Shown piece after piece: positions 1 to 44,629 of a DNA stretch of 51,471 nucleotides. How positions within the stretch are numbered: the first letter of the stretch is position 1; every line of letters begins with the position of its first letter. The notes beneath the pieces are model-generated. The model searched no databases. It was not told where the DNA came from and was given only the letters and a program-made list of their open reading frames with translations. Location of the stretch: assembly GCF_001194135.2 (NCBI RefSeq), contig NC_068984.1, forward strand, positions 13,984,634 to 14,036,104, given 5' to 3'. The DNA comes from Octopus bimaculoides. Its lineage: Eukaryota. The position numbers and the translations under genes were made by a program.

Positions 1-94
1 ATATATATATATATAATACAAATAATATGTGAGTATATGCATATATACGTACATGTATGTACATACCTACATTTACATGTATATATAGACGCAT

Positions 95-255
95 ATCTGG
101 GTACAGGACGTCACAAAAAAAAATGTGGACAAAATTAAAAACAGAACATAAACAGAACACAGAAAACAAACAAGCCACACAGAGAAAATTTCTTTCATCA
201 GCTGCCCCTATTCTAAACTAAGCGTGGAGAAAATGAAGAGTTGAAAGTTAACAAT
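95..255 (-). repeat. Short repeat family X (CTGATGA-containing), lying 3' of the Penelope-like ORF; probably its terminal repeat
   Basis: Minus strand reads ...tagtttagaataggggcagCTGATGAaag...gacgtcctgtaccc. The same sequence recurs at 29932-30115 and 30190-30335. Confidence 0.55.
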
Positions 256-4867: not shown

Positions 4868-5620
4868 ATGTCTAAAGACAAACTCACTGCAGTTGTAAAA
4901 ATACATTTTCTCCCTAGTGCTTCCCTCTAGCGGATTCTCAGACCTTCGTTTCTGACTTTTAGCCATCTTCAATGGGAAATAACGAAGTCAGATAACCCTG
5001 AGCAGATTCAAAGCTGTAGTTTTATCTAAAAATGATCAATTTCATTGACTGAGCTGCGCTTGTAGACCGCTAGGTCGGAATAAATATAGCAACATCAGTG
5101 CCAAGCAGTGAAGGAGTATAAACAAATCTTTACTTTAGTTCGTAATATCTTTTAAATTCTAAAGGCAATCTAACTGCAGTTGCCGTAGATTAAAAAAAAA
5201 TCACCCTTGTGGTAAAAGATGGAAAAACCAAGTGCTTTCCTCGAGCCGATCCCCAGACGCGTTTCTCGCCTTCTAGCCACCTTCAATGGGAACTACCCAA
5301 GAGAGATAACTCTGCGGAGATTCAAAGCAGTAGCTTTAACAGAACTAAATAAATAAGTACCAGAGACTGCGCTGTCACCAGACGGATTTAAGAGCGCAGC
5401 TCAGTCAATGAACTTGATTGTTCTCAGGTAAAGTTACGGCTTTGAATCTACGCAGGCTTANNNNNNNNNNTATCTCTCTTGAGTGTTTCTCATTGAGGAA
5501 GGCTAAAGATCGCAAAACGGGCGCCTGAGAAGCCCCTAGCTGGCCAGATATAGTATTTTTACTCCTTTTGCCATAAGACAGATTCTGATTTTTAACTGCA
5601 TGCAATTTGCCTTTCGAAGT
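4868..5620. repeat. Three diverged copies of a ~200-bp unit (two direct, one inverted)
   Basis: AGATTCAAAGC at 5004 and 5318 and its reverse complement at 5439. The 18-mer at 5043-5060 is the exact reverse complement of 5393-5410. Confidence 0.75.
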
Positions 5621-5710: not shown

Positions 5711-6404
5711 CTGGGTGTTTGTGCGTATACATATAGATATATGTATATACCCGCAAATATGCACATACACATGCATATACATGCGCACACATGTTTATAT
5801 AATTGTCTGCTTGTGTTTGTAAGTGTCTAGATGGGATTTTGTGAGTGTGTGTGTGTGTGTGTGCTCACGTGCGCATGTGCAAGGTATTTTGAACGTGCGT
5901 ATATAAACTTGTTTAAATATCTGAATCTTTCGGGGGCACAATGGCATGTTTTGAAAAGAAAATGGTGTCTCTCGCAGTGAGAACCAAAGAACTGCTGACA
6001 ATATTTTCAGGAGTCAGCATCCGTGAAATTACAATCAATTTTGAAAATATAAACGTAAGGCGTGTTGCTAAATACCGTAAAATATTTTAATGAACATTCC
6101 ACCACTTTTGTCAACGTAAGACATTTGAATGAAGGAGAAATCCACTTTATGGTCACCCAGCCTGCTAGAAATAGCAATATAATCTCTCGGTAATCATATC
6201 TTACGGTATTATAGAAGGTAAGCTATAGAGGATAATATAGTTTATATATACTATCATTAAAAATGTTTGAAACAAAAGACACATGTTTTTTTCTGCTATC
6301 AAGGTAACCACTGGATCGTCAATCAACGTATTAGAAATATCAGTCAGATATCCAACAGATATCTGACTGTTATCTTCAAAATCAGAAACGTTGCATATAG
6401 GCGC

Positions 6405-6562
6405 AGAAGTGGCTGTGTGGCAAGTAGCTTGCTTACCAACCACATAGTTCCGGGTTCAGGCCCACTGCGTGGCACTTTGGGCAAGTGTCTCCTACTATAG
6501 CCTCGGGCCGTCCAAAGCCTTGTCAGTGGATTTGGTAAACGGAAACTGAAAGAAGCCCGTCG

Positions 6563-6593
<31 letters not shown>

Positions 6594-6601
6594 GTATGTG
6601 T

Positions 6602-6638
<37 letters not shown>

Positions 6639-6850
6639 NNNNNNNNNNTTTGTGTTTCTGCTTGTCCCCCGAACATCACTTGACAAACGATGCTCGCGTG
6701 TTCACGTTCCTGTAAATTAGCGGTTCAGCAAAAGAGACCGATAGAATAAGTACAAGGTTTACAAAGAATAAGTCCTGGAGTCGATTTGCTCGATTAAAAG
6801 GCGGTGCTCCCGCATGGCCCCAGTCAAACGACTGAAACAAGTATAAAAGT
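6405..6850 (+). mobile_element. SINE family A (tRNA head, CORE-like segment, internal TA/TG microsatellite, 3' body), full length
   Basis: A/B-box head, then CORE-like ttgggcaagtgtct, then a body ending gactgaaacaagtataaaag. Near-identical to copies at 9470 and 19893. Confidence 0.85.
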
Positions 6851-9059: not shown

Positions 9060-9292
9060 ATATTTATTTCTTTATTGCCCACAGGGGACTAAACATAGAG
9101 AGGAAAAACAAGGACAGAAAAAGGGATTAAGTCGATTACATCGACGCCAGTGCGTAACTGACACTTATTTCATCGACACCGAAAGGATGAAAGGAAAAGT
9201 CGACCTCAGCGGAATTTGAACTCAGAATGTAACGGCAGACGAAATACCGCTAAGCATTTCACTCGGCGTGCTGACGCTTCTGCCAGCTGGCC
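9060..9292 (-). mobile_element. SINE family B (tRNA head, Meta-like central domain, tail type 1)
   Basis: Sense strand gagctggcagaa..gaaatgcttagcggtatttc..gagttcaaattcc..gtcgactttgcctttcatcctttcggggtcgat. Confidence 0.9.
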
Positions 9293-9469
9293 GACACCAG
9301 ACGTATATTGTCAACGTTGATCGGGTAGTTGGGCAATGCCTTGTCTTGTGTTGGTCCGTTTTCAGTTTAAGGATCTCTACAGCCGTATATTGAATTCCTT
9401 CCAACGGATCTCATGGGGTCATGCAGCAGTTGTTTACTCGTAAAAATATGACATTTTAAAAATAAAACT

Positions 9470-11089: not shown

Positions 11090-11690
11090 GTTTTTTACTC
11101 GAGGCACAAGGCCTGAAATTTTCGGGAAGGAGGAGCCAGTCGATTACATCAACACAAGTACGCAACTGGTACTTAATTTATTAACCTCGAAATGATATAC
11201 GGCAAAGTTGACCTCGGTGGAATTTGAACTCAGAACGTAAAAACAGACGAAATACATCTAAGCATTTCGCTCGGCGTGCTAACGTTTCTGGCAGCTCACC
11301 GCCTTTACTTTTGTACCCTAGGCACAAGGCCCGAAATTTTGGGGGATAGGGCCATTCAATTAGATTTTATTCCAGTATGCAACTGGTACTTAAGGATGAA
11401 AGGCAAAGTCGACCTCAGCGGAATTTGAACTCAGAAAGTAACGGCAGACGAAATGCCTATTTCTTTACTGCCCACACGGGGCTACACACAGAGGGGACAA
11501 ACAAGGACAGACAAACGGATTAAGTCGATTATATCGACCCCAGTGCGTAACTGGTACTTAATTTATCGACCCCGAAAGGATGAAAGGCAAAGTCGACCTC
11601 GGCGGAATTTGAACTCAGAACGTAACAGCAGATGAAATACCGCTAAGCATTTCGCTCGGCGTGCTACCATTTCTGCCAGCTCGCCGCCCT
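11090..11690 (-). mobile_element. SINE family B cluster: one monomer plus a dimer joined at about 11457
   Basis: Three gaatttgaactcagaa cores. Junction reads gacgaaatgcc|tatttcttt. Confidence 0.85.
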
Positions 11691-12515
11691 ACCTGTAATT
11701 TAATTTTGCTATAGATACAGGAACGTTCTTTATTTGCATGATACAATAAACTATCCTACATGGACTAAGTTTGACAAGTTATGTATTGAGTTTGTACTTG
11801 AGTAATTATTAATTTCTGTGTATTTCTATGCATATTTAATCTTGATTATCATATCCTTTATTGCATACATTGTAACATATTTTTCATTACTGCTATGTTG
11901 TTGTTTACTTGTCAATGTACAATGTTTTGCATAATATATATGGGAATATGGAGATATTTGTATGAATATCCATCTCTGTTTATATAAACGTGTGTACATA
12001 TATAGGTATATGCGTGCGTGCGCCTGTGTATATGTACATACAATACACATATACACATATATGTATGTACATGTATAAATTCAATATGTGTGAATGTTTT
12101 GCATATATACATATATATATTATAGATAGAAAGATAGATAGAAAGATAGATAGAAAGATAGAGAGAGAGGGGGAGATAGAATATATAGATAGATACACCC
12201 ATACATGCATACACACAAAACAATGTATTATATTAGGTTATATCCGGTTATAAAACTTTATGAATTTTTAATCACACGTATTTCTGGCTAGTATTTGTAT
12301 ACTATTACTGTGTCTCTCTGATGTCGTAATTCATTTATATATTTAAACATTAATTCATATTTTTCATTCAGTTTCGGATTATTAATACTTTTCATATGAC
12401 ATATTAACTAATTTAACCGTTTTTTCCTTTCTCTATGCATACATGCCCATATATCATCATCATTATTTATATAAGAATGAATGTATATATTTACATACAC
12501 AAACACATATATACA

Positions 12516-14067: not shown

Positions 14068-14660
14068 TGAGCGAGGCGACCACTCCACAGGCCCTCGCTT
14101 CCCATTCCAACTATCAGGGAATATTGCGTTCAGCCAATCACGGACAGTCAGTGAATAATGTGGAGGAGCACCATTCTGCTGCTAGCATAATTCTTCAAAG
14201 TTCTCTTGTCCCTTTAACTTAGGGAGAACTTGGTTTTGTAAAAGTTTCAGATACGTGACCCTATTTACGCCACCTTCAATAAAGAATGGCCCCACGAGTC
14301 CGTTGTAATTCACACCTGCACACACCATTATGCCAGGACTCTTGTGGACATACCCAATCATGATTCGAGTATTTTCTCGTCTCCAGTACACACGGTTATA
14401 CGGAACGACACTCCGTGAAACATAAAATTTTGACTCATCAGTCCAGACAACTTGTTCTTCCAATGTTGGATCATTATTCAACATGTCCAGCCATTTTTCT
14501 GCAAACTGCAAACGATGATCTGGATCATCTTCCATTAATCCATGAATCAAACGAAGGATATAAGGATACAGTTTCATATCATGGAGCGTGTCTTAAAGAT
14601 GTCTTTGAGAGAAAAAATGAGTTCGATCTCATTCCACATAGCGGAACATCTTGCAAGTGA
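14059..14660 (-). mobile_element. Tc1/mariner-superfamily transposase remnant
   Basis: VVWTDESKF (first catalytic D), GIMVCAGV..GLVGPFFIEG, QQNGAPPHY (QQDGA with D to N) and VEWSPRSP (WPPRSPD). Truncated before the third acidic residue. Confidence 0.85.
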
Positions 14661-15508: not shown

Positions 15509-15771
15509 NNNNNNNNNNNNNNNNNNNNNNNNNNNNNNNNNNNNNNNNNNNNNNNNNNNNNNNNNNNNNNNNNNNNNNNNNNNNNNNNNNNNNNNNNNNN
15601 NNNNNNNNNNNNNNNNNNNNNNNNNNNNNNNNNNNNNNNNNNNNNNNNNNNNNNNNNNNNNNNNNNNNNNNNNNNNNNNNNNNNNNNNNNNNNNNNNNNN
15701 NNNNNNNNNNNNNNNNNNNNNNNNNNNNNNNNNNNNNNNNNNNNNNNNNNNNNNNNNNNNNNNNNNNNNNN

Positions 15772-15813
<42 letters not shown>

Positions 15814-15988
15814 CATATATATGTACAGATATACAAAAACATATATATATGCTATATATATATATATATATCCTATACATATGTATATATATATATATAC
15901 ATACATACATACACGCGCACTCACATATATCCATACATACGTGTGTGCATATATGTGTGTCCGTGTGTGTATATATGTGTGCGTGTTT

Positions 15989-16051
<63 letters not shown>

Positions 16052-17015
16052 TATATATTATCACATGATATTGGCAAAAAGAAGAGAACAAATCTTTGCG
16101 CTTTACTCCAGTTACAGAATGATTTGTCTTATATTTTTAATGATAGATTCTGCCACAGTGGACACCAACTTGTGATACATGAGAGCTCGGCTAATTGAGT
16201 GCAGAAAAGTATTTATTTGTGTAAATGATAATAGCTAATAATATTTAATTCTATGAATATTTCCAACATGTGTTCGACACTACACTCCTTTGGGAGTAAA
16301 AATATCGCAATGAAATCTTATTGTAATTCATATATGGCGTTTCGTTATAACTCCATTGATTTCGTATAAATTCTGCAATATGTCTACACCTGAATGGTGT
16401 GTAACTAAATTTATATATGCTGTCACATACTGATATATTATTAAGCAATGAGTCACGCTCGTAGAAATAACACAAGAATATACACCTCGCTATTCCAGCA
16501 TATATATTCTTTACTCGTATTTAATAAATGACGTACATATATCTCCATGCAATATTTCAATACATATAGAATCTTTAAAATAAATATTATAAGATAAAAC
16601 CACAAGAGCTGCATGAAACGTCTGGTTGAGTTGTTTATCTTCCATTGGTAGTATCTGAGAGAAAACGGAAGGATGGGAAAAAAACGCTTTCATTTAGCTG
16701 TAAAGTTTAGCAACGTTTAATGGAATGCTTCTATCGATTTACCAGGATATTTGCATATGTTGTTCGAGTATCTTGTTTTCAGTAGCCTGTCTGTATTTAT
16801 ACTGATTCCCGGCTTAAACACATACCTACTTATCCTGTTGGGGGACAGTTTTAAACTTAACTAATGTAATCGTCTCCACTATTGCGAACGGTAAAATTGA
16901 CTCTGCCGAAATTTGAACTCTGAACGTATAGTGTCGTAGCTTATTAAGGATTTACTCTACCGGTATTTCGTTGCTGATGTACAATTCTGTCTTTGTCAAT
17001 ACTCATAAATGGTTT

Positions 17016-17390
17016 AAGACGGCGAGCTGGCAGAAATGTTAGCACGCCGGGTGAAATGCTTAATTTAATGCGAAATTTTTACTCCCAAAGGTGTGTAGTG
17101 TCGAACACATGTTAGAAATATTCATAGAATTAAATATTATTAGTCATTATCATTTACACAAATAAATACTTTTCTCCACTCAATTAGCCGAGCTCTCATG
17201 TCTGTCTTTACGTTCCGAGTTCAAATTTCGTCTGTCTTTACGTTCTGAGTTCAAATTCTGTCGAGGTCGACTTTGCCTTTCATCCTTTCGGGGTCGATAA
17301 ATGAATTACTAGTTGCGTACTGGGGGTCGATCTAATCAACTGGCCCCCTCCCCCCAAAAAATTTCAGGCCTTGTGCCTAGAGTAGAAAAG
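17016..17390 (+). mobile_element. SINE family B (tail type 2) with a 139-bp insert in its anticodon-like loop
   Basis: Head ends gaaatgctta, insert spans 17063-17201, then gtctgtctttacg resumes with a ~30-bp tandem duplication. The insert is the reverse complement of 16177-16316. Confidence 0.9.
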
Positions 17391-17779
17391 AATATTCATA
17401 ATTCTTTCTAGATTTGCCACACACAAGCAAGTATTTAGCTAGTGGTTCGGTTGACTGCATTGATCTCAGTACTTGACTAGCAGTTTATTTTGGCGACTCC
17501 GACGGAACGACTGATAGACAAAGTTGACTTCAGCGGGAGTTGGATACAAAACATAAAGAGCCCAAACAAATACGGCAATGCAATTCTATTTCCAGGGTTC
17601 TAAAATTTCTCCCAATTCACAACCTCTGTTGCAGTAATTGATATAAACAAATACACTAGGTTGACATATGCCTGCAGATATACATAAATCTATCGCAAAT
17701 CAATAATACATACTTAGGTACATGGCTATGCACTCAATATTACTTTCTTTACACTAATTACTTTGTAATATTAAACAAT

Positions 17780-17930
17780 TTTAAAGCTGAAATACCTGGA
17801 CAACTTCTATTACCTTAAAAACTTTACAGAATTTTTCCACTTTCTTCTAGTAGATTTGAACGTCATTTTGCCTTGCTCCGAAGTTTATAAGTTTCAGTAA
17901 AAGAGACGTCAATTCAAAAGAATATATATA
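17780..17930 (+). mobile_element. Possible hAT transposase C-terminal remnant
   Basis: KLYRIFPLSSSRFERHFALLRSL resembles the P-S-S-x-x-ER-x-FS dimerisation motif. Confidence 0.3.
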
Positions 17931-19892
17931 ACTTTTGTACAGAAAGATGTACTTGTGGCTCCTGAAAAGAGAAATCAATAATAATTCATTCAACTATTCC
18001 GATTTGGTGATCAATTACCAATTTTAACCTACTTTATATACTAGTCTAATTCAATAATTCTATATTATTCGATAATTGTAAGTTATACGAGATTTTCTTG
18101 AATTTACAGAGAGGTAAAAGATAAAAAGTTGTGAAAATAATTATAAGCAGCAATGCCTTACGGACTTCGAAATAACGTGTTCACCAAATCCTAAATTAAT
18201 CATAAACGATAGGTTTAATTTACACATTAGCAATTAATATTGCTTCTTTGTTTTAAGAAAGAAGTTTAAACAAAACATATTACATTCAGCGTGGAATAGT
18301 TTGTTGAGTGTATATTTAATTGTAGTGTTTCATTCCAAGAACTGCAGTTAATTAAGTTGAAGTATTTGTTCCTTTCTTCAATACATATGTATTTCCCCCG
18401 ACTTCTTTGGCGCCAATAACCAGATGTCCAACCATCAGACTTAAACTAATTCTCATACACACAAAAAAAAAAAAGAAAAATTAAAACATGCTCACCATTC
18501 TCAGACCTACTTTCTTAAGGGAACGTGCTACATAAAAAAGATTATTCTCTACCAGCGTCTTAGATTGCAATACAAAGCAAAGAATTCTTTACATTCTTCG
18601 TTGTATTATATGAAAAAAAATGAAACGAGGAATAAATGGGTAAATTATATCTTACAAATCTATTGAAGGGTGGCTGCGGTAGAGTTACGGAATGAATTCC
18701 AGTAATATTAATGCTTTACAAATAATTCGAATAATACATCATAAGAACCCTTTTTCAATGGAATGAGATAATCCTTTTTTGTGAAAGAACTGTAGAAAAA
18801 AAATAAAGAATATATGCTTGGTGTCGTTTTATGAGATCCAATCAAAACTTGGATCAGACTTGCTACATACATTGAGAATTCGATTTAACCATCAACATTC
18901 ATCTTTTCACATCGTATCACGGGTGTTTATAAAGAAAACTCGAACAGTTTTGCGATACTATTTTCACTAGTGAATAAACCGACGAGAAAAAAAAAAAGAA
19001 GATTTTCAAATTCTTCAACATATCTTCTTTCTTTCAAAGATATAAGAATAATCTTCTAGTTATTATCACTTCAGTTATAGGAGAGCACAGAAAGCTATGG
19101 AATAAATATTCATGGATTATATACTTGACACAGAAGTGCGATATCGATATCAATTTCAGCCAAATTTATCTTTAGTCGTAGAACGTGAGATTTTTTCATT
19201 TTTTATTTTTTATTCTGCTTTAGTTTTCTACGATAGAGAAGGCCAAGTTATGACGTGCATAACCTTTTGCAGAAAGCTCGAGGTACAACTGGAAGCGACT
19301 AAATGAAATTGGGAGTTGTATTTCTTTTTACCACATGGGGCCCACCAAGTTTCAATTATCCTTTACATTTAATCGAAACGCTTCAAGATGTCGTAGATAA
19401 CGTGACTCAGAGGAACTGGTAAACAGATTCCATGAAATATTATTTGACCATATTACAATGTTAGTAGATTACATTTTAATTCTAATCCTGATCACACCTA
19501 GTTTTCGTTTCTATCTAATCTTCATCAATTCAAACTTCTTCAAAAGTGACTAATTGGGACAGTGTTGCACATTCTTCGCGTCAAATCCTTTACGATCATT
19601 CAATTAAAAAGGTTTCATCTCTTTAGGTAGCAAGTGAGCTTCACTAATGCTTAAAATGTTTGCCAAAAGTATGTATTCTATAGAGTCCGAGTAGAGAACA
19701 GGAACTACAGTCTCAAATATAGTATGCATAAATGTATGTGCAATAGCTGATGTTTTTATGTAGTACTTCTCGTCTCATAAACCTACCTCTAACTACAAAT
19801 TATATGCTCTTTTATGTGAATGTAATAAAACGTTCCTGACAGACAGAGCTTCCGTATCAGTGCATAACTGCTATTTCATTCTGATAAAGCGC

Positions 19893-20300
19893 AAGAATGG
19901 CTGTGTGGTAAGTAGCTTGCTTACGAACCACATGGTTCCGGGTTCATTCCCACTGCGTGGCACCTTGAGCAAGTGTCTTCTACTATAACCTCGGGCCGAC
20001 CAAAGCCTTGTGAGTGGATTTGGTAGACGAAAACTGAAAGAAGCCCGTCGTATATATGTATATATATATATATGCATGTGTGTGCATATGTTTGTGTGTC
20101 TGTGTTTGTCCCCCCAACATCGCTTGACAACCGATGGTGGTGTGTTTACGTCCCCGTAACTTAGCGGTTCGGCAAAAGTGAGCGACAGAATAAGTACTAG
20201 GCATCCAATGAATAAGTCCTGGGGTCAATTTGCTCGACTATAAAGACGGTGCTCCAGCATGGCCGCAGTAAAATGACTGAAGCAACTAAAAGAGTTCAAG
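19893..20300 (+). mobile_element. SINE family A, full length
   Basis: Collinear with the other family A copies. Confidence 0.9.
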
Positions 20301-20324
20301 AGAGTATAACTATATATTGCTTTC

Positions 20325-20515
20325 AAATTTTGATACAAGGCCAGCAATTTTAGGGGAAGAGGTAAGTCGATTACATCAACCCCTAGTGCTCAACTGTTAC
20401 TTTTTTTTATCGACTCTTAAGGACAACAGGGAAAGTCGACCTCAGTGGAATTTGACCTCGATATGCCGCTAAGAATTTTTCCCAGCGTACTGAACATTCA
20501 TCCAGTTCACTACCT
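20325..20515 (-). mobile_element. SINE family B, diverged and internally deleted
   Basis: gtcgattacatc and aaagtcgacctcagtggaatttga motifs. Confidence 0.65.
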
Positions 20516-20745
20516 TTGGTAGCTGTATATTGATGAGAAATACTTCAGAAATTGTAAGCCGAGTTCAGCAATTACATCTCAATGTATAATAGAAAATTGG
20601 TACCCTTTTCAATTTCTGACAATAGTTTTTTATTGGGTAATTTAAGAAGACTAATAGGGTTCTAGCGAAATTTCAAACACAGACACACACACACACACAC
20701 ACATACACACACACACACACATTATATACATGATATTTTATTTTC

Positions 20746-21020
20746 GAAGGGCAGCGAGCTGGCAGAATCGTTAGCACGCCGGGCGAAATGCTTTAATTGA
20801 ATGTCCGTAAAGGATTTCACGCGAAGAATGTGCAGCACTGTTCCAATTATTTCGTCTGCTGTTACGTTCTGAGTTCAAATTCCGCCGAGGTCGACTTTTC
20901 CTTTCATCCTTTCGGGGTCGATTGAATAAGTACCAGTTACGTATAGTGCGGTCGATGTAATCGACTTAATCCTTGTTTGTCCCTTCTATGTTTAGCCCTC
21001 TGTGGGCAATAAAGAAATAC
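20746..21020 (+). mobile_element. SINE family B (tail type 1) with a 56-bp insert in its anticodon-like loop and a 13-bp TSD
   Basis: TSD ATATTTTATTTTC at 20733-20745 and 21021-21033. Insert 20794-20849 is the reverse complement of 19551-19606. Confidence 0.9.
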
Positions 21021-21599
21021 ATATTTTATTTTCCACATCGATAGTTCGGTTGAGTAAAACAGGGTACTAAAATTCTTGGTGCTGTATCGTTGTTTTCTTA
21101 TCGTAGTTTAGCATGTGATTTTCCTGAGAAAGTCATGTGACTCAAACGTTAGGTAGACTGTTTGATATAGCATCAGTCTTTGTATGGAGGGGTTTTTCCT
21201 TTATGATATATCATACGTGTGATTATACTACTTTGCTATATAGTTATTAATTAAAGACAGCAGAATTAAGATCAATAAATAAATACTTCCGTATGGGATT
21301 GTGTCAAATAATTTGAACACGATCCCCTATTCATATAGATAAATGCAATATATTAATAGTACTTGTGGTAACAAATCTCGTGATGATGATGGTGATGGTC
21401 GTCATCGTTGTTCGTTAATGGTTTTCTGGAACAAAAATTTGAGAGCAAGCAGAGTTTGAAGAACTCTGCGCAGAAGAACGTTGAATCCGAAGTTGTTACG
21501 AGATCGCGAGGTCGACGACGACAACAGAGGATTGGTCGACACGCAAATCTAGATGACCGTATAGTCGATGGTGCAATAGATGAAGTTGATCACAGTGAT

Positions 21600-21900
21600 G
21601 CTGGTGCTTGTGTTGAGCATCAGATGAAGTTGACGACACAGGTATTGCTGCTGACCAACAGATGTAGACACCCACACAGATGTCGGCGCTGGCAAATAGA
21701 TCTAAACTGGAACAGCAGTGGTGCTGGACAACAGATGTAGCCAGACACACTGGTGTTGCTAACCAAGAGATGGAGGGACCCACAAAGATGTCATCACTGT
21801 CCACTAGATTTAAACTGGAACAGCAGTGGTGTTAGCCAGCAGATGTAGACAGTCACACCACTGGTGTTGCGAACCAACAGATGTAGATGATCAGAAATTT
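21600..21900. repeat. Degenerate ~108-bp tandem repeat in a GC-richer island
   Basis: AAACTGGAACAGCAGTGGTG at 21704 and 21812. CCAACAGATGTAG-like motifs at 21655/21763/21874 and 21728/21836. Confidence 0.75.
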
Positions 21901-22419
21901 GACCAACGTGTTGTCGATCAACGGATGCAGATAGCTACGCTATGTTGCTGAGCAATACATGTAAGTGGCGTTGGCCTACCCATGATGACGTCCATACCGG
22001 TGTGACAGATTCATTGCTGGTACTGATCAACTGACGTTGACGGCCAAATTGGTGGTTTCGATTCACAGAAGAACGACATCAGTGGTGTTCACCAACAGAT
22101 GAAAATGAAATCATTGATGTTCTTACTAGACGGCCAAACAGGCAGTGTTACTGACCAACTACTGTAAATGGCACAAACATTTTGTTGTTGACTTGCAAAT
22201 GTACATGAACATATAAGTGGTACTGTTGACGATGATGACCACAAATGTGGTGTTGTTGACTATCTGCTGATACTACCACATCGCGAGTTTTTGTTCACCA
22301 CAAGCATGGGGATAAAACAAAGATGAAGAAAGCCAGGTAAAGATGACCTTAAAGGTGATTGCCTGAAGCTCACACTCCAGAAGATAGAAATAAAATTGCA
22401 GCCAATAGTGATTTTGCTA

Positions 22420-22858
22420 ATGTTGCTGGCACTGCTGCTGATGTTGTTAATGGTTATTATGTTGATGATTTAATGAGGAGGGGAAAAGGAGGAGGAGGAG
22501 GGGAGAAAGAGTGAAAGAGAAAAGGTGAAAGAGGTGATGATGAAGATGATGATGACGAGAACGAGGAGGAGCAAGAGGAGGGCGACAATGACGATGGTGG
22601 TGGGGTAGATGCTGGCGGTGGTGTTGGCAGTGGTGGTGTTAATGGTGATGATGATGATGACGATGTCAAAGATGACCAGTTTGATGATGACCAGAGCAAC
22701 AATTTTGACGACGATGATGACGATGCAATTGATGGGGAAAGACTGACCAGATGCAGACGGAATGAAGAGATGGGGAAGGAGTGAGGAGAAAACGGAGAGG
22801 GAATGAGGAGGAAGAGGAGTATGCTGCATCTCCTACTGAAGCTGCTACTGCTGCAGAC

Positions 22859-22891
<33 letters not shown>

Positions 22892-22925
22892 ATTGATGAC
22901 GACTGCTACGACGACCACCATGATG
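22420..22925. repeat. Compound triplet low-complexity tract (GAT/GGT/GAG)
   Basis: Direct reading of the sequence. Confidence 0.85.
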
Positions 22926-24194
22926 GAATCTCGCTTGGCACGTTGTAAATAAATAAAGTAGAGAGAGTGAAAGAGAGGAGAGAAGCCATAGAATAAAAAC
23001 CAAAATGACTTAGCAGCAAAGTAAAAGAACATCGAATGTGTACCGAAGTTTCTTTATTAAATCGAAAAAGACCATCAATGTTTAAAACTGTGTCGATTTT
23101 GTAAGAAGACAAATAATGAGAATAAATAAAATTTCCCTGGTAAAAGTTGTGTAAACTTCGTCATTATTTGACAACTAGCCTATTGCTTTAACGTAGTATA
23201 TTTGCACTGTATATTTCTTATTGTATTTTAGTAGGTATAAGGATTCAGTGCAGATTAATTTAGTTTAGTTTGAGAAAATTTGAGAAGCAGCTTCTATTTG
23301 TGCCAATAGCCATATGTTTCCGTTAGTGCAAAGCGACTATTCACACGTTCCGTTTGTTCATTGGTTGTAAATCCTTTAAAATACAATGCATCAAACAGCA
23401 ACTTCTATAATTGCTACCGAACATATTTGCAATCTCTGACAATTAAACGTCTACCTCAAACCAAATATGAGCCGTTAAATTCTGTATTTAAGTGAATAGT
23501 TTGACTAATTCATCATTAGACTCGTCTTGTGTAGGTCACAGCAAATATGTCGAGGAATCGATAAGGTAGACAAACGATGTCTAAGGTATTCACATATGTT
23601 ATGTTTCGATCTTTGAGTTGTGCAATCGAATATTTAATTATTGTACATCCCTGTATATATACTGAGAACATTCAATAAAGACCGATTAAAATAGTTAATA
23701 ATTTTTACATCTATAAATATATAGTTTCTTCCATTCTTTCTCTCCATCTTCCCTTCCCATACAACCACTTCTACCGTCCGCCTAAATGACATTTAATTCT
23801 CGTTTGCATTACTCCACCTACCAAACGAATATTCTGTCAAAAACTATATATAAAGTCGGAAGGAAAAAAGCAGACCGTAGGCTCATGGCAACTGGTAAGC
23901 AAGAACTCTCAAATCACAGATAAACGGAAATTTTCTTCCCCCAAAATTAAATATCTCTGCCTGTGTGTATATAGGTGCGTATATGTGTGAGATACCATAA
24001 AGCAAAATTGTTCAGTACTGTTAGGTAGAATGGAATTGTATTCATTCAAATTATGTCGCTATTTTAGGATATCTGTTCTCATGAAGTGAGGAATTTGGAA
24101 CCGTGTCTCACATAGACTTAAATTTGAAAGAATTTAAAACCACACCCACTCCCACCCACATATATTTTACCTTTTAAATTGTATCTTTTATTTG

Positions 24195-24395
24195 ATACCA
24201 GTCATTAGATTGCGGACATGTTGGGGCATCGCCTTGGAAGATGTTTAGTTGAATGAGTTGATACTAGTACTGAGTATTTCAAGCCTGGTACTTATTCTGT
24301 CGGAATATTGTGCCGAGCCGCTACGTTACGGGGATGTAAACACACCAGCACCGTTTGTCAAGCGGTGGTGGGGACACAAAGACACACACACACAT
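24195..24395 (-). mobile_element. SINE family A, 3' body fragment
   Basis: gagccgctacgttacggggatgtaaacacaccagca is the reverse complement of the family A body. Confidence 0.7.
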
Positions 24396-24461
24396 TATAT
24401 ATATATATAAGGTTATGAAGGGTATTGGATTCAACCAAACCCAAACACAGTTTAATTTCAG

Positions 24462-24570
24462 CTAATAACACGTCTTGCATTGAGACTGATTGAAGAATTT
24501 CTGCTTGAATTAGAGACTTGTGGATTAGAAAAGCTGGAGGAAGACCGGTTTCTAACCATCAGCAGCTACT
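24462..24570 (+). CDS. Candidate exon (phase 0 to 1): LITRLALRLIEEFLLELETCGLEKLEEDRFLTISSY
   Basis: Acceptor tttaatttcag and donor GTAAGC. Only one of the three frames is open. Confidence 0.4.
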
Positions 24571-25580
24571 GTAAGCTAAATTGGCTCGTCATTTATGATG
24601 TGAATATAACCGATCATATAAATTCTCCTGCAGAATTTTCGTGCAGAAAAATGAAATGCGTTGGCAGCTCAATTCAAACCCAACTGTAGTATTGTGCTCA
24701 ATACTTACTGTGTTACATGTAGTTACTGTAATAATTGCAGTTTGGTAGAGATACAAAGCGGCCTGGATAGCTATTTGATATGTAACAGGCAAATGAGCTT
24801 CACAGCGGTATAAAGCGTTCGTATCATGACTGATACCCATAAAGATATCTGTACGCATATCTGGCGGTAAAAAGGCTTATTTGCCTGTTATTCTGGTATA
24901 ATGTCTGCACGCGTATCAATGGTGAAGCAAGCGAGCGAATTGTCTATTTCATATATCCTGCATCAATAATATTCCATTCTTTGGGTCAGCCCATTTCTTG
25001 TATAGTCTTGAGCTTTCACAGTGGTAATAGCATTGGATATTCAATCGAAAACTTGGAACGACCAATTACATATTGCCAAATGTTATTACAAATATCGTTC
25101 ATTCAAAAAAAATATAAAAAAGTCTCAAAACGATGACATATTTGTTATTAAATCATACTTTTCCCTATAAACAAGCGTAATATTCTGCTACCTTGACAAC
25201 AAGAATGTTCCAGTGGAGTAGAAAGTTGATAATAAAAAAATCCATTCGACTGGAGAAAAAATACATTAGCGCAGAAATATGCAATAACAGAAAACATGGC
25301 TGGTATACCAACATCTGTACAGCTACCGTTGCAGACAGAGTGATAATCAGGTGTGACTAATGCTTTACAAATCACACCAGCTGCATTAGGATACTCTTCA
25401 CTAAAAGCATCCCAGAAACTACATCTGTTCTATTCCATCGTATTTTGCTCAGAGAACTGAATTATTTTATAAGAGTTTTCGTTAGCATTATTCTCTAGAA
25501 ACATTTTCTTTCCATTGAAAAAAAAAAACAAAAAAAACAATTACTCTGGATGTTTCACTGTCTTTATGTCATCATTTCAG

Positions 25581-25642
25581 ATGATACTAAATGCAGCTAC
25601 CGGAAGTTGCTCCAGATGCTAATGGCTGAGTATAACCACCTC
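25581..25642 (+). CDS. Candidate exon (phase 1 to 0): (Y)DTKCSYRKLLQMLMAEYNHL
   Basis: Acceptor catcatttcag, phase-compatible with the previous exon. Donor is weak (GTAACC; alternatives at 25650 and 25661). Confidence 0.35.
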
Positions 25643-25899
25643 GTAACCAGTGAGCACATCGTAACCTCGTGTTACATGTACAGTGTTTAATATTTAGTTC
25701 TCATACAGCATGTCTTTCAAATTACGTTATCAGAATAGCTTTATGTGAATATAAGGTGTAATTTGTGTTTGGTTTCTAGGGACAATCATCCGCTGTTGAT
25801 GATATTTCTTTTTGCATCTATCCCTTCATCAACTTCAAATGCCTTACGGGCTTTCTTTCATCTTTCTTTGAAATGACTGTAATTGTGGTGTGGTGGTAT

Positions 25900-26170
25900 G
25901 CGAGATTTAGTAATCATGGAGGATATTCCAGAGAACGCAAGCTCCCGAGAGGAACTCCCATGCTCGCCTGGCAAAAGGATGAGGCCACCTGGATATGGAC
26001 CATATCATCCCGAAAATAAAACGTGATTTGCATAGGGTCAACACTCCTACAAAGTAAAAGCAAAGTTTCAGAAGCATCGAGACCTGGTAGAGGATGGCGT
26101 TCTTTTAGAGAGAGAAACATGATGCAGCGCAACAAAATGCAAAAAGAGGCTGCGAGGTAACAGGGATGCA
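25900..26170 (+). mobile_element. Possible RTE ORF C-terminal remnant
   Basis: MEDIPE...EEL..PGKRMRPPG resembles the RTE tail MED.RIPK..LYGEL..GKR.RGRP. Confidence 0.35.
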
Positions 26171-26239
26171 GCTGGGAGGGAAAAGAAAAGCGCGTTAAGA
26201 GTCCCAGAGTTGTAGAGTCGTGAATATTGTAGAAAAGTC

Positions 26240-26892
26240 GTGAGTGAGTGAGTGAGTGAGTGCGTGAGTAAGTGAGTGAGTGAGTGATGTGAGTGAGGCA
26301 GTGAGCGAGTTAGTGGAGTGAGTGTGTAAGTGAGCGAGCGAGTGAGTGAGTGGAGTGAGTGACTAAGCGAGCGAGTGATTGAATGACTGAGTGAATGAGT
26401 CAGCAAGTGAGCGTGAGAGTCCGTGAACGAGCAAGTGCGTGAGTGAGTGAATTGGTGAGTGAGTGAGTGAGTGAGTGAGTGAATGAGTGAGTGAATGAAC
26501 GAGTAAATGAGTGCGTGAGGGAGTGGATTGAGTAAGTGAGCGAGCCAATGAGTGAGTAAGTGAGTGGAGTAAGTGAGTGAGCGAGCGATTGCGTGAGTGA
26601 GTGAGTGAGTGAGTGACTGGAGTGAGTAAATGAGCGAGTGAGTGAGTGGAGTGAGTGGGTGAGTGAGTGAGAGAGTGATTGAGTGAGTGAATGTGTGAGT
26701 GAGTGAGTGAGGAAGTGAGTGAATGAGTGAGTGAGTGAGGGAGTAAGTTAGTGAGTAAGCGAGTAAATGAGCGAGTGACTGAATTGGCGGGTGAGTGTGT
26801 TTGTGAGTGAGTGAATGAGTGAGTAAGTGAGTGAGTGAGTGAATGAGTGAGTGAGTGAGTCAGTCAGTCAGTCAGTGAATGGAGTGAGTGAG
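26240..26892. repeat. Long imperfect (GTGA)n tetranucleotide satellite
   Basis: About 650 bp of GAGT/GTGA variants. Confidence 0.95.
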
Positions 26893-26935
26893 TATTGCAA
26901 TAGAATCGATCGATGTAAACCCTATTTATTCGTAG

Positions 26936-27013
26936 GATGCCTCAGAAAGCCGTGGCTCAGCAATGGAAACATCACTGATAAAAACTGCTAAAATGAATAT
27001 TACCAACACTAAC
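26936..27013 (+). CDS. Candidate exon (phase 0 to 0): DASESRGSAMETSLIKTAKMNITNTN
   Basis: Acceptor tatttattcgtag and consensus donor GTAAGT. 78 nt, only frame 0 is open. Confidence 0.45.
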
Positions 27014-27391
27014 GTAAGTCACATTCTCACTCTATTTACATCAGATTTGAATTTCTCAAAATACAGTTTAAGTTTTAATCAGAATGTTTCCTGAATACAA
27101 TCATTGTTTACGCTGTTATGGCTTAAATGTCATTGTCCAACGACTCACTCACCTATCCATTCATCCTGAAAAGATCTCTGATAAAGATTACTTTTGTAAA
27201 GTTATTTTCAAATGAAGATCTTATTGATGAAAATGTCACTGAGCCGTCAGCGTACAGTAACATCTTATTTCTACAGAAACAACATAAAAATTAGAGACAG
27301 AACTAGAAGATATTTGGCAAATTAATATATAACACGAGGAACCAGTTTTCGGTCTGTATATCTAGTTTACCATAATGTCTTTACATTTCAG

Positions 27392-27451
27392 TTTGTGCCA
27401 GAACCGCAGAATCTGTCCAGGAACCTTTTGTTATTTAGGTCTCCGATACAA
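27392..27451 (+). CDS. Candidate exon: FVPEPQNLSRNLLLFRSPIQ
   Basis: Good acceptor ctttacatttcag but weak donor (GTTATG). Confidence 0.25.
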
Positions 27452-28316
27452 GTTATGATATGTGCATACATACATACATACATGCATACATACATATATA
27501 TATATATATATATANNNNNNNNNNNNNNNNNNNNNNNNNNNNNNNNNNNNNNNNNNNNNNNNNNNNNNNNNNNNNNNNNNNNNNNNNNNNNNNNNNNNNN
27601 NNNNNNNNNNNNNNNNNNNNNNNNNNNNNNNNNNNNNNNNNNNNNNNNNNNNNNNNNNNNNNGTATAGAGGAATATATTATTTTGTTTAAAAGAGTTCCA
27701 ACACTATCTGTTTTTTATGTTTTATTTATATTCCTGCAGAACCAATGTAGGGTATAGAATATGGAATATACAATATATAATATAATATACAATATATAAT
27801 ATAAAATAAAATAAAATAAAAATGGATGGGACCATGAAAGAAAGTATTGAATGTAGATGAAATATTGAGTGTTCAATATAAAGGATCAAATATATAAATA
27901 TATAAATATAAATATATAAAGGCGACTCGAGTTTCAGGGCTATTTCCCTTCGTCATGGCCGGTATGACAGACTTTAACAGACTATATAATATATATATAT
28001 ATGTATATATGTAATATATATTATATATGATATGTATATTATATAATTATATATATTATATGTATTATATATAATTGTAGATATATTATATATATATACG
28101 TATACTATGTGCGCGTGCGTATGTGTGTGTGTACACACAAACATATATATATATATATATATATATACAGTCTAGTGTCCAAAATTTTCATTTCATGGGG
28201 ATATATAATGCAAGCGTGTACCAATATTCACTTGTACCGAGTAATAATACTGGTTAACATTTGTGAGCTTATATAATTTCAGTTGGTTGGTTTAACCATT
28301 CTTCGTACATTCTCAG

Positions 28317-29931: not shown

Positions 29932-30335
29932 CTGCCTCATCTTCGAAACGCCTAGTTTAGAATAGAGGCAGCTGATGAAGTCTATAGGTCGCTTGTCTGT
30001 TTTTCTATGTGTTCATTCTTTTGTCCGAAAAAAAAAGTCCGTATTTTGTGCTTTGTTTAGGTTCCCGTTCCTTTTTGTCCACGTTTTTTGACGTCCTCTA
30101 CCTGGATATGCATCTATATATACATGTATATGTAGGTATGTACATATATGTATGTAAGCATGCATATACTCATATATCATTTGTATTTCGAAATTCGGAG
30201 TAGATGGAACAGGGACAGCTGACGAAGGGGTATACTCTTTATGTTGCATGTCTCGCTTCTCTGTTTGTATGTTTTTTTTTTCGTTTCTCATTGTGTTTAA
30301 TGTTTTTTTGTGTGATGTCCTGTACCCTTATATGC
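29932..30335 (+). repeat. Two tandem diverged copies of repeat family X
   Basis: gcagCTGATGAAG...gacgtcctctacc (29932-30115) and acagCTGACGAAG...gatgtcctgtaccc (30190-30335). Confidence 0.65.
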
Positions 30336-30421
30336 ATGTATGTATACATATAGATGTAGGTATGTACATATATGTATGGATATATGCATATATTTATATA
30401 TTATTTATTGAATATATATAT

Positions 30422-30657
30422 ATATTAATAGCTATAGCCAAGCTAACATGGCAGTCCATGCAAATAGGACGAATGCTGCCGATGATTCGCTCCAAGAGGC
30501 CATCGCCTCTAGCTAGCTATGTAACACACGAGCCTGTGGTTCGAGGTTTGTGTGTCACATAGCTAGCTAGAGGCGATGGCCTCTTGGAGCTAATCAACGG
30601 CAGCATTCATCTTATTTTCCTGGACTGCCATGCTAGCTTGGCAATAACTATTAATAT
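30422..30657. mobile_element. Foldback/MITE-like element: 114-bp inverted arms with an 8-nt loop
   Basis: 30422-30535 versus the reverse complement of 30544-30657 shows 12 mismatches and no indels. Flanks are AT-rich. Confidence 0.8.
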
Positions 30658-32347: not shown

Positions 32348-32580
32348 TATTTCTTTATTGCCCACAAGGGGCTACACACAGAGGGGACAAACAAGGACAG
32401 ACAAAGGAATGAAGTCGATGTAATCGACCCCAGTGCGTAACTGGTACTTTATTTATCGACCCCGAAAGGATGAAAGGCAAAGTCGACCTCGGCGGAATTT
32501 GAACTCAGAATGTAAAGACAGGCGAATTACCGGTAAGCATTTCGCCTGGCGTGCTAACGATTCTGCCAGCTCGCCGCCTT
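32348..32580 (-). mobile_element. SINE family B, full length, with a 14-bp TSD
   Basis: TSD AAGAAGTAGTTCCT at 32334-32347 and 32581-32594. Confidence 0.92.
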
Positions 32581-33183
32581 AAGAAGTAGTTCCTATTACC
32601 CTTTCTCCTTTGATGGATCCAGCATGGTGGGGGGAAGGTGAAGCCGTACCAAGGATTTGGGCTCCACTCGCGTAGATTTCAGAATCCCTGAGGCAGATTT
32701 TCCATCACACCGCAACAAGAATGGAATTTTATGGTGGACTAGTGTTTATAGCTGTAGCTTATAGTATCCACTAACTTCGTGTCTTGCTAATAAATGGGAT
32801 ACTTGCTTTGAGCATAAAAGGTTCTCTATCTTTTGTGACACTTCCTGAAATTAAGGCTAATTTGCTCGGTTTATATTGCTTATGTGCAATATATGTGAAA
32901 GATCCGCTGTTTTCGTCTGCAAATATCGGTCAGTAGTAGGACAGGCAGTGAACGATTTGTATCGTGTTTTAAAAAGAGTTTTTCACTTTACCGTTGGGTG
33001 GAGGTTCAGCACAGTTAAAAATTGATGTACTTATTGACAGCTCTTTTGTCATAGATTTGAAGATAATTGCTTTTAAGAAATATTGCCTCGGGTCGACGAA
33101 AGTCTTGTTAGTGAAATGACTGGAAAGAAACAATATGATAGCGTGTCTGTATGGTGCTGTGTTTGTGTGTGTGTGTGTGTGTC

Positions 33184-35699: not shown

Positions 35700-37940
35700 A
35701 AAGCAGATTTGGGGAGAGCGGACGGCTTGTCACGGATATAAATGCTCAAAACAACTGCATCACCTGAACAAGCGAGGAGGCCAATAAGACCCCAAGAAAT
35801 ATCGAAGAAGCATACATAAAAACAAAGAAGAACTGGAAGACACCATGACACAGTCCCAAACCTGTGCTTGAAATATTTAATAAACAAGCATAAAGAACTT
35901 GTAAAATTATATAACGGTATATTGAAAGGCCAGAAATAAAACCCAAATGACTCACTGAGAGAAAACAACCTTATTCTAATAACAAACTGCAACATCTACA
36001 GACACAGAACGAACGTTTACAGATACAAATCTACAGCGGACAATGCATTAACTGCAACAATAATTGAAGTTTATGCATTGTATGATTTTCCTCTCCAGAA
36101 GAACACAAAGAGTGTTGTAAAGACACTTATGGATGTAATAATTATGTAATAAATATTTAAAGATATAATGGGAAAATGATTTTGAAAGAATGTTCTAAAC
36201 ATGGCTTATATTGAGTGCAGAATTGTTAGTTTTTGTCAAGTACTCCCACCCGTGGAGTATGCATTTATTAGCTCCGAATATGTAAACACGAATAATAAAC
36301 TGGTAAATCAACCATATCATAAATGAATGGAACAGAATTCTACAGATAGGAACAAAAGAGGAATTTATGAAAATGAATCCCATCTATATGAGAAGAGGGT
36401 TATTCCAGAGGGATTCTTCTTCTCAAGGTCTTTTCTTTCTTTTTGCCTGGTGTTATTACTTTTATCAACTTCATTGCGAAACGACAGTTAACGCGAAAAC
36501 AGTGTGTAGGGAAGGGGAAGCGGTGGCTTTTGTGTATGAATGATATTGTGTTGTACGCCATCTATGATAGAAAATTGCAAACAATATTACAGAGAGTACA
36601 AACATTTATTAAAAAGTACCAAGTTAACCTTATAAATAGGAAATCTAATATAGAAAAACATCATTAATATTATATTAGTTAAAGAAAAATAAATATATGA
36701 GTTAGAACACATAGAAACAAAACATCATCGTATTTATCATTTATGCAGGAGAAATGGTAGCCTTCTGCATCTCCTAAATTGTTATGAAATGTCTATTGTA
36801 TGGCTACAAAAATATTTGGTTGCGAATAGAGAGAAAACTAATAGAATTGCTGCGAAAACGAACAAAACAAAAAGAAAATATTTCTCTCTCCCTCTCTCTT
36901 GAGGTGAGTTAACAATTGTAAGCAGAGGCTGAAAATAATAGACAGTAGTGAAGATACGAGAGAAATAACCTCAGAAGTGGTTAAAAATTTAAAAACTATA
37001 CTGGAAATGAGGTTACAAAATGTCATGGAAAATGGTAGCAAAAACATGCCTACGTATTCAACGTATGGTATGACTGAACAAAGCAAATACGACAAAAAAA
37101 TATATGTTTATCTATGGTTGAAAAGTACAGGATTCAAAGCTGAGTCTGAAGGATTTTTTCTTTTTATTTCAGTGTAAAAACAAAGTTCTAAAATTAAAAA
37201 CTATCAAAAGGATATCATTTTTTCTACTCTAGGCACAAGGCCGGAAATTTTGGGAAAGGGTGCCAGTCGATTAGATCGACTCCAATACGCAACTGGTACT
37301 TAATTTATTGCTGTTAAAGGGATGAAAGGCAAAGTCAACCACGGTGGAATTTGAACTCAGATCGTAAAGACAGACGAAATACCTATTTCTGTATTGCCCA
37401 CAAGAGGCTAAACATAGAGGGGACAAACAAGGACAGACAAACGGATTAAGTCGATTACATCGACCCCAGTGCGTAACTGGTACTTAATTTATCGACCCCG
37501 AAAGGATGAAAGGCAAAGTCGACCTCGGCGGAATTTGAACTCAGAACGTAACGGCAGACGAAATACCGCTAAGCATTTCGCCCGGCGTGCTAACGTTTCT
37601 GCCAGCTCGCCGACTTATAATAGAGAATATTTGCGCAAAGATGACGGTGTCGAAGCTTTGATAATGGGGACATTATCAAAGTCTAGGACATGCCAAGTCA
37701 TACAGACTGAAATAACAATTACTTCAATGAGTTTTGTGGATGATACAATTACCATAATGTGAGATATGCTAATCTATACATCTCGGAGATGGGAAAACAA
37801 CCCCAGTTTGAGTTACGTCAACCGGTACAAACAGAAACAGTAAAGGGACAGATATATTATCAAAAATCATCGGGATACAAAGTGTCTTCCCATTTTGGTC
37901 AATCCATCCGCATATTTAAAATAGACTTAGCGGAATTATG
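35700..37940 (+). mobile_element. R4/Dong-like (REL-type) LINE remnant, heavily decayed and interrupted by SINEs
   Basis: KNWKTP (cf. KNWKAPG), IYMRRGLFQRDSS (cf. IRRGIFQGDSLSP) and WLKSTGFKAESEGFF (cf. WL.S..LK.ETEGF). Confidence 0.65.
37212..37615 (-). mobile_element. SINE family B heterodimer (tail 1 unit plus tail 2 unit) joined at about 37383
   Basis: Junction gacgaaatacc|tatttctgtattgccc. Confidence 0.88.
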
Positions 37941-42036: not shown

Positions 42037-43352
42037 CATGCATACATAGCTTTTTAAGTACTACATATACTTGGGGCCAAGTTATATAGTTAATATGAAT
42101 ATAGTTAATACTCAATGAATTTTGGCATTTGGGATGGCGACATATTTGCAATGTTGAAATTTAGATTTAAAAAATAAACGATATGGTTTTAAATAGAAAG
42201 TATTTTTATAATGTTATTTCTCTGTACTGGTTGTAGTATGTGTGTTGTACAGTGGTGGATGACCGGTTAGAGCTGGAAAACTGGAAGAACAGGATGCAGA
42301 GAAGTAGTTCAGGTGAGAGGATATACAGTCAATAATTTCAGAAAATCAGTGTTGCAAGGAACAACAGTAGAAGAGAAAATAGAAAGGTGTATACAACACC
42401 ACGGCTTTAGAAAAGCTGGCGAGCGAGTTGCAACTGTAGTTGTTTTCAAAACCCTTCTCTAATATGAAGGTAGTTTTCATCTTCCCCGCTTCCTCTATTG
42501 CTTTTCTTCTTCCTTTTCGTCCACTTTGTCACCATTTTCTTTAGTTTCTTTACAATATCTGCATTCTTTTCTGTCTCTCCTCCAGGATATCCTTCTTAGT
42601 TACAGTATCTTTCTCTTTCTTGATCATCCTTTTCTCTGACTTCATCAATGTATTCTTTATCTCTTCCCTTCATATCCTTCTCCATTTTTTCCCCGTTTTC
42701 TTCAATTCATATTTGTCGTCTGCTTCATCCATTTCTACTTTTTTCTCTTTTACTTGTTCATTTTATCGCCCCTTCTTCCCCATCCTCCTCCTTTCATTGT
42801 TATTATTGATATTATTAAACACATCGCACTACGCCTCTTTTCCCTCCCTCTTATTCACCATTTCCCACCTCCTGTTACACGTCTACCTATTTTCCCTGTA
42901 ATGTCAGGTCTCGCTCAGTTATTTTCCTTCTACATATTGTCTAGCTTAAAACTTCCATCCTCCTCTTTCTTTTACATTTTTATTCTCGTCCTTCAATACT
43001 TATTTTATCCTTCTTTCTAACTTCCTTTGTATTTATTTCTGCTCAATCTCTCTCATTATCATCACCTCCTTCATTTTCTTCTACATCTACGTCTCGTTCC
43101 AACAACGTTCCCGCCAACATCCACGTCCCTAGTAACATCACAACCACCACTGCCACCATCGCCTTCACCATTACAGCCAACAGCATCACTACCACAACTA
43201 CTAATACCACAGCCACCATCACCACCACCACTACCAACATCAACTACAGCACCATCATCACCAGCAGAACAAGCATAAAGAGCTCCTGTACCACCACCAG
43301 AAATACCACCCGCACCACTTGAACAACAACCAGCACTAACACTACCGCTATT

Positions 43353-44578: not shown

Positions 44579-44629
<51 letters not shown>

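Follow-up and report, generated by a model that had tools for sequence, protein, structure and literature searches.

The question raised by this locus is how an inverted copy of upstream DNA came to lie inside an apparently complete SINE of Octopus bimaculoides, and whether it was written in while the SINE integrated or at a later time. The stretch analysed, hereafter the window, comprises 51,471 nt of contig NC_068984.1 (positions 13,984,634 to 14,036,104, forward strand), and all coordinates given here count from its first letter.

Structure and age of the inverted copy in the 17-kb SINE

The repeat search identified 17064–17201 as the reverse complement of 16177–16314, an ungapped match of 138 nt at 94% identity with the two arms 749 nt apart. 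The arm-to-arm BLAST match reached an E value of 3e-47 within the 51-kb window, and gapped alignment lengthened the match to 16316/17063, with seven substitutions and one 1-nt indel. The three approaches agreed in confirming the first-pass annotation of this DNA, which had read 17063–17201 as an inverted copy of 16177–16316 at about 94% identity, from a source about 750 bp upstream. A self-comparison of the whole window also recovered the inverted pair and gave no other good copy of either arm in the 51-kb window, where further similarity was confined to weak AT-rich matches (72–80% over 36–62 nt, including 30372–30430 at 72% and 23685–23720 at 80%). The source, or left arm (16177–16316, + strand), has surroundings that are unique in the window and carries no element boundaries.

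The SINE that holds the copy is a full-length, type B unit on the + strand (17015–17394) with its own target-site duplication. The left duplication, AATACTCATAA (16998–17008, +), matches the right one, AATATTCATAA (17391–17401, +), at 10 of 11 positions, and six extra nucleotides (17009–17014) separate it from the SINE head. The head (17015–17062, +, 94% to the consensus) ends with A45, which lies in the apical tetraloop (UAGC) of a hairpin; position 1 of the SINE numbering is the G at 17018, preceded by TAA at 17015–17017. At the hairpin tip follows the inverted copy (17063–17201, +), then an extra direct copy of SINE positions 56–83, that is, of the T-arm or box-B region (17200–17227, +, 28 nt), and then the remainder of the SINE (17225–17394, +), which runs from position 51 (ATTTCG...) to the type B tail ...GAGTAGAAAAGAATA, whose AATA overlaps the right duplication. 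Head, inverted copy, extra T-arm copy and body are all enclosed by the one duplication. An old, diverged antisense fragment of a related SINE (16860–16975, −, 74–77% to the T-arm region) lies between the two arms and is no part of this event.

The left junction falls at 17062/17063, where GAAATGCTTA is joined directly to ATTTAATG. At the right junction of the copy (CATGT/CTGTC), the GT at 17200–17201 belongs to both the copy and the SINE, and the extra T-arm copy has ATT in common with the resumed SINE, giving 0–1, 2 (GT) and 3 (ATT) shared bases at the three junctions. The T-arm region is seen as a tandem repeat of 30 nt (17200–17229 and 17230–17259, 90% identical), and the ATTTC that ends its first copy (17225–17229) is equally readable as SINE positions 51–55. 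The SINE was left after A45 and resumed at about A51, and with ATTTC read in the latter way only GCGGT was lost, which is akin to the loss of AGCGG in a second case at 20.8 kb. The insertion point given by the first-pass annotation, after GAAATGCTTA, was hence retained, and so were its 2-nt GT overlap at the right junction and its T-arm duplication of about 30 bp, while the loss that it described was narrowed to GCGGT alone on the alternative reading. Its proposal of multiple template switches was also borne out, as the structure needs at least three switches with 0–3 nt shared at each. What is seen is a template-switch insertion of several steps, old, and placed at a structurally defined site in the SINE.

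Under another reading, the 139-mer would be a multi-copy transposable-element fragment that was inserted twice, or the arms would be the terminal inverted repeats of one element. The two weak AT-rich similarities located above are in keeping with this, but no other good copy occurs in the window, the right arm has a small deletion in place of a target-site duplication, the left arm lacks element boundaries, the SINE head would fall inside the supposed element, and a different sequence of 58 nt shows the like geometry at 20.8 kb. Such an origin is barely credible. In particular, terminal inverted repeats or a MITE were rejected: there is no target duplication around 16177 and 17201, each arm is unique within the window, and the two arms enclose the SINE head. 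A DNA-transposon excision footprint was rejected as well, since footprints are merely a few nucleotides long.

Ages were estimated from non-CpG divergence, with crude subfamily consensuses of 6–9 copies from the window as the reference. The 17-kb SINE carried six non-CpG substitutions in 195 nt (3.1%), and its two arms differed by 5.8%, or 2.9% per arm; at 20.8 kb, the corresponding values were 6.0% for the SINE and 4.3% per arm. The two T-arm copies of the 17-kb SINE differed at 1 of 28 positions. These values would fit an insert that is as old as the SINE or little younger, so that they accord with an origin at integration and with a somewhat later one alike, and the earlier suggestion that both are of roughly one age is plausible, with the reservation that the consensus is crude. 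Each inverted copy also bears one tandem double substitution relative to its source (17144–17145, TC/CT; 20804–20805, TC/AT). Such changes would fit error-prone synthesis during copying, so that the divergence between arms would slightly overstate the age.

The window is assembled as a gapped scaffold with 13 N runs, and this is what would favor an assembly artefact, for example a chimeric join within a high-copy SINE. However, the arms differ at eight sites, the junctions connect the SINE with unique sequence and not one repeat with another, and the SINE keeps its duplication. The nearest gap is at 15509–15771, and both the 17-kb and the 20.8-kb events lie in the gap-free stretch 15772–27514. 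An artefact is therefore very improbable, in agreement with the first-pass annotation.

A second insert at the tip of the SINE hairpin

A similar geometry had already been pointed out at 20.8 kb, and was found there upon analysis. An A-type SINE (20746–21020, +), flanked by a perfect 13-nt duplication (ATATTTTATTTTC, 20733–20745 and 21021–21033), carries at its hairpin tip a 58-nt reverse complement (20792–20849, +) of 19551–19608 (+), at 91% identity. Its junctions share TT on the left and TA on the right, AGCGG was lost, and the SINE was left after T44 and resumed at T50/A51. In both events, 5–10 nt were replaced by 58–167 nt that include the reverse complement of nearby DNA, both donors lie upstream of the 5′ end of their SINE at distances of 0.7–1.2 kb, and both copies are inverted. 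A low-copy self-comparison of the whole window gave these two as the only young local inverted pairs, and both of them (2/2) lie within a few nucleotides of a SINE hairpin tip. The probability of this by chance is about 3e-6 if positions are random, as calculated against the tips of the 11 tip-containing SINE units of this one 51-kb window.

A few other repeats were noted in the window. An older local inverted pair (4993–5060 and 5393–5460, 68 nt, 82%) abuts a 10-N gap, and a direct pair at 80% is found at 4916–5024 and 5231–5338; neither is associated with the SINE family that bears the tip inserts. A second, unrelated SINE-like family, which reads GCGCAAGAATGGCTGTGTGGTAAGTAGCTTGCTTACGAACCACATGGTTCCGGGTTCA... 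followed by a TA/TG microsatellite, is present at 19890–20290, 24276–24392 and 6344–6679. One copy of it sits between the 20.8-kb SINE and its donor, and if this copy arrived afterwards, the donor would originally have been about 740 nt away, near the 696 nt of the 17-kb case.

The SINE family to which both carriers belong has about 20 copies or fragments in the 51-kb window and a consensus of about 234 nt, consisting of a tRNA-like head, a conserved core and one of two alternative tails, ending ...GGGCAATAAAGAAATA (type A) or ...GCCTTGTGCCTAGAGTAGAAAAGAATA (type B). Within the window it is multi-copy, its 5′ end is defined and its 3′ tail is of LINE type, and target-site duplications flank both insert-bearing units (10/11 at 17 kb and 13/13 at 20.8 kb). 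A box-A-like TGGCAGAAACG and a box-B-like GAGTTCAAATTCC were seen by eye in the head, in which no tRNA was detected by ARAGORN and no tRNA match was found in Rfam. The target-site duplications tend to begin with AATA or ATA and so to overlap the terminal AATA of the SINE tail (examples are at 9065–9296, 20733–21033, 32348–32592 and 43338–43850), which suggests priming through pairing between tail and target.

The consensus RNA was predicted to form a 13-bp hairpin, in which positions 31–43 pair with 48–60 (four of the pairs being G·U) under a UAGC tetraloop at 44–47. On its own as sense RNA, this hairpin had a predicted energy of −17.2 kcal/mol (z = −3.5), a value equalled by 1 of 200 shuffles. 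The values were −5.9 kcal/mol for antisense RNA, and −6.3 and −5.0 kcal/mol for single-stranded DNA of the + and − strands, respectively, no better than shuffles. According to these folding predictions, the hairpin is stable solely as sense RNA. In an analysis of covariation, 91% of cells were paired, but double changes were absent and the result did not differ from that of shuffles, as the copies are too alike.

In protein searches, the antisense reading frame of the SINE gave a single match, to a 543-nt ENA metagenome contig (ERZ23499442, scaffold_285125), which carries a diverged copy of the SINE with no tip insert. In this copy, the hairpin pairing is kept through a U-to-C change (G·U to G-C), and the tail is joined to a unit of type B beginning at about position 128. 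When the SINE head was scanned against metagenomes, only chance matches of 20–21 nt were obtained, in three contigs. In the window, five long reading frames gave no hits in Pfam. A reading frame at 14182–14577 that had at first looked transposase-like had no protein-search match and no Pfam domain, and exact-protein look-ups of three reading frames, one of them across the left junction, gave no match.

Fused SINE units and the timing of the insertion

Three more units in the window start exactly at G48, each directly after the 3′ tail of another unit. These are 11392–11457 (−, GGCATTTCG...), fused to the tail AAAGAAATA of unit 11458–11691; 37217–37383 (−, GGTATTTCG...), fused to the tail of unit 37384–37617; and 43353–43536 (−), fused to the tail of another unit (43537–43574). 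On the minus strand, the respective junctions are 11457/11458, 37383/37384 and 43536/43537. A fourth tail-to-internal fusion, at 47988/47989, shows AGAAA homology and enters at position 18. Departure points at five junctions were 48, 48, 48, about 50 and about 51.

The 43-kb compound (43353–43835) is flanked by a perfect 15-nt duplication, AATAGCGGTAGTGTT (15/15), and one duplication likewise surrounds the whole three-unit array at 11 kb (13/15) and the compound at 47.8 kb (12/14). The single duplication round each compound implies that several SINE RNAs were copied in a single integration, a hallmark of template jumping by reverse transcriptases of LINEs, and compound insertions of this type seem common in the O. 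bimaculoides genome. The arrays are composed as follows: 11090–11691 (−) holds an A unit, a truncated B unit and a B unit; 43353–43835 (−) begins with an A unit and ends with a truncated A unit; and 47755–48186 (+) holds an A unit and a B unit from position 18, within one target-site duplication. Nesting of one SINE into another at the tip was rejected, because what flanks the dimers upstream is something other than a SINE head.

The A+B dimers at 11.6 and 37 kb could be copies of one dimeric SINE family instead of independent jumps, but their B parts are just 74% alike, which speaks against one dimeric family. At the 43-kb junction the second unit is of type A, so at least two of the truncation and fusion events are independent. 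The 43-kb compound spans an N run (43575–43621), and its units 43353–43536 and 43626–43809 are 100% identical over 184 nt. Part of this structure may be an effect of assembly, while the junction of tail and G48 itself lies in continuous sequence; in truth there may be just one SINE that carries foreign sequence at its hairpin tip, or one unit may have been assembled twice. Within its duplication (43836–43850 and 43338–43352, −) there is an 8-mer, TAGCGGTA, that is identical to the hairpin tip (CTTAGCGGTATT), which could be a coincidence or a hint of pairing between the RNA and its target.

Taken together, the site specificity, a hairpin predicted only for the sense RNA and the truncated, fused units point to a step of reverse transcription rather than to later DNA replication. 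The alternative is that the SINE was already resident when FoSTeS/MMBIR, a short template switch or snap-back repair of the polymerase-theta type copied nearby DNA into it. Such processes typically leave inverted local copies with little homology at the junctions, exchange a few bases and switch serially, and replication template-switch mutations have been described by a four-point model (PMC5453318, PMC8794818). As in those mutations, a reverse-complement copy of nearby sequence here replaces a few bases and creates an inverted repeat that can form a hairpin, and in both SINEs the per-arm divergence is slightly lower than that of the SINE, which allows a somewhat later date. However, the described switches are mostly far shorter and nearer to their source, usually tens of bases copied over distances in the tens to hundreds, and they are tied to no retroelement position, whereas 58–139 nt were here taken from 0.7–1.2 kb away, twice at one SINE position. 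A post-integration origin gives no reason why two independent events should have struck one SINE family within the same few bases; as DNA, the hairpin is weak on either strand; and the tip is also a reverse-transcription breakpoint in other SINE units. We consider this origin possible, yet doubtful. Should the events post-date insertion, replication template switching would have a new sequence-specific hot spot in the SINE hairpin.

An integration-coupled origin of one form or another is probable, and the reading that we prefer, with roughly even chances overall, is serial template jumping by the reverse transcriptase on the first strand, during the SINE's own integration. We infer both this timing and the strand that was synthesised. 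In the first-strand form, the SINE would be inserted by target-primed reverse transcription and the inverted copy written in at that moment. A LINE-encoded reverse transcriptase would start at the 3′ tail of the SINE RNA, copy the T-arm and the 3′ strand of the hairpin, and lose its template at the apical loop, at about positions 48–52, either because the RNA is broken in the loop, as in a tRNA half, or because of a block there, for example a modification. The end of the cDNA would then re-prime three times on very short matches. It would first return to the T-loop region on a SINE template, yielding the extra 28-nt copy, then move to a minus-sense single strand about 0.7–0.8 kb upstream of the target, yielding the 139 nt, and lastly re-prime on the 3′ end of the 5′ part of the SINE, at position 45, and run to the 5′ end. 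The product would be a SINE that looks full-length and has a normal target-site duplication, with a long inverted repeat alongside.

The departures occur after the full 3′ side of the stem has been copied. A structural stall would be expected at the stem base, so that a template ending in the loop is the better fit. Since the cDNA is the minus strand under first-strand jumping, the 139 nt would have to be copied from a minus-sense single strand, for which displaced bottom-strand DNA or a local transcript of minus sense may be considered; we infer the nature of this donor, like that of the block. The minus-sense donor is the weakest point of the first-strand model, as end resection at the target would remove the DNA strand of that sense, and the model must therefore invoke a flap, an R-loop or a local transcript. 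Re-priming inside the T-arm of an RNA that has already been copied is also awkward. A further point against it is the small number of cases, namely two loop inserts in one 51-kb window.

The sequence from 43150 to 47200 contains long low-complexity, codon-like tracts that are rich in GGT/GTT on one strand, with poly-Q/N/H/T/S in translation, and two large N runs. It may be a low-complexity coding exon, and its strand would bear on the idea of an RNA donor.

Integration could also have involved a fold-back at the DNA level, during second-strand synthesis. Once the first strand was made, the upstream (reciprocal) end would be resected; the 3′ end of the top strand, having copied the first 45 nt of the SINE from the cDNA, would fold back to copy the 139 nt from upstream DNA of its own strand, left single-stranded, and later return to the cDNA out of register. 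Both sources are upstream and inverted, exactly as a fold-back of the reciprocal end predicts, the distances of 0.7–1.2 kb fall within the range of resection, and a return out of register would naturally account for the T-arm duplication. There is an experimental precedent in L1, whose integration is accompanied by local inverted duplications that arise through reciprocal-end fold-back, with 2-bp junction homology (bioRxiv 10.1101/2024.12.14.628481). The inserts resemble these duplications in the copying of the upstream side, the few base pairs of homology at the junctions and the sub-kb to kb distances. In contrast, the published copies lie at the element-flank junction, between the 5′ end of the element and the flank, while the copy at 17 kb is internal, at a defined position of the RNA structure, and is preceded by 45 nt of SINE head. 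Further, the hairpin of the cDNA strand (−5.0 kcal/mol) is no better than shuffles, which leaves the site specificity unexplained, and the truncated units on SINE tails mark the tip as a departure point of first-strand synthesis. A fold-back is accordingly judged unlikely.

Known chimeras and the dsRNA potential of the inverted repeats

Twin priming, which produces L1 5′ inversions, inverts part of the element itself within one retrotransposition event. The present inserts are alike in that an inverted segment stems from one event, but it is flanking DNA that is inverted and the SINE parts keep one orientation; twin priming was rejected, as no part of the SINE is inverted.

Closer parallels to first-strand jumping are the chimeras made by LINE reverse transcriptases (U6/L1 and Mg-SINE/WEIRD/MGL), for which site-specific and double jumps are documented (PMC2104539), and serial template jumping has been reported in vitro (PMC8594491). 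The chimeras show several templates per integration, direct fusion, a single duplication and preferred switch sites, and the 17-kb and 20.8-kb inserts are similar, having direct fusions with 0–3 nt shared and a recurrent switch site. They differ in the middle piece, which here is no abundant cellular RNA but an inverted sequence from 0.8 kb beside the target, and in the return of the enzyme to the SINE, which gives a full-length appearance with an internal insert. In chimeras of tRNA halves and L1, the breakpoints are in the loop, suggesting cleavage before reverse transcription (bioRxiv 10.1101/2025.02.02.635956). The breakpoints at 17 and 20.8 kb are likewise in the loop of a tRNA-like RNA; however, those halves are joined to L1, mostly in antisense, whereas here both halves of the SINE are in sense, with foreign sequence between them.

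If the first-strand reading holds, the structure of a retroelement RNA would dictate where the reverse transcriptase leaves its template, and the enzyme could capture DNA or RNA near the target, in inverted form, before going back to finish the element. This would be a natural record of template jumping for a non-L1 LINE enzyme. Each event would make, in one step, a long perfect inverted repeat beside the SINE, with the potential to form a dsRNA hairpin.

As RNA, the arms of the 17-kb pair were predicted to form a duplex of about 130 bp (−201 kcal/mol), and 128–129 arm-to-arm pairs were present in the minimum-energy fold of 16150–17230. For the 20.8-kb pair, the predicted duplex had −84 kcal/mol. 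If the region is transcribed, from either strand, the 17-kb arms would be expected from these folds to pair over about 130 bp.

RNA-editing substrates are very abundant in cephalopods. A broader proposal, which we hold to be rather unlikely, is that breakage of the SINE RNA at the hairpin tip, akin to that of a tRNA half, is routine, and that the reverse transcriptase of the partner LINE bridges the break by copying any minus-sense strand available near the target, which would make SINE integration a genome-wide generator of local inverted repeats of 50–150 bp. Were such a systematic generator at work, it would supply ready-made long dsRNA hairpins that could feed ADAR editing or small-RNA pathways, and would be a new source of editing substrates in cephalopods.

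One further inverted structure was observed in the window. The segment 30422–30657 is a near-perfect palindrome, with arms of 114 nt that are 89% complementary and a spacer of 8 nt. It is adjoined by a repeat (30041–30425) that also occurs, inverted, at the start of the window (1–167); a fold-back element or a MITE would be one interpretation.
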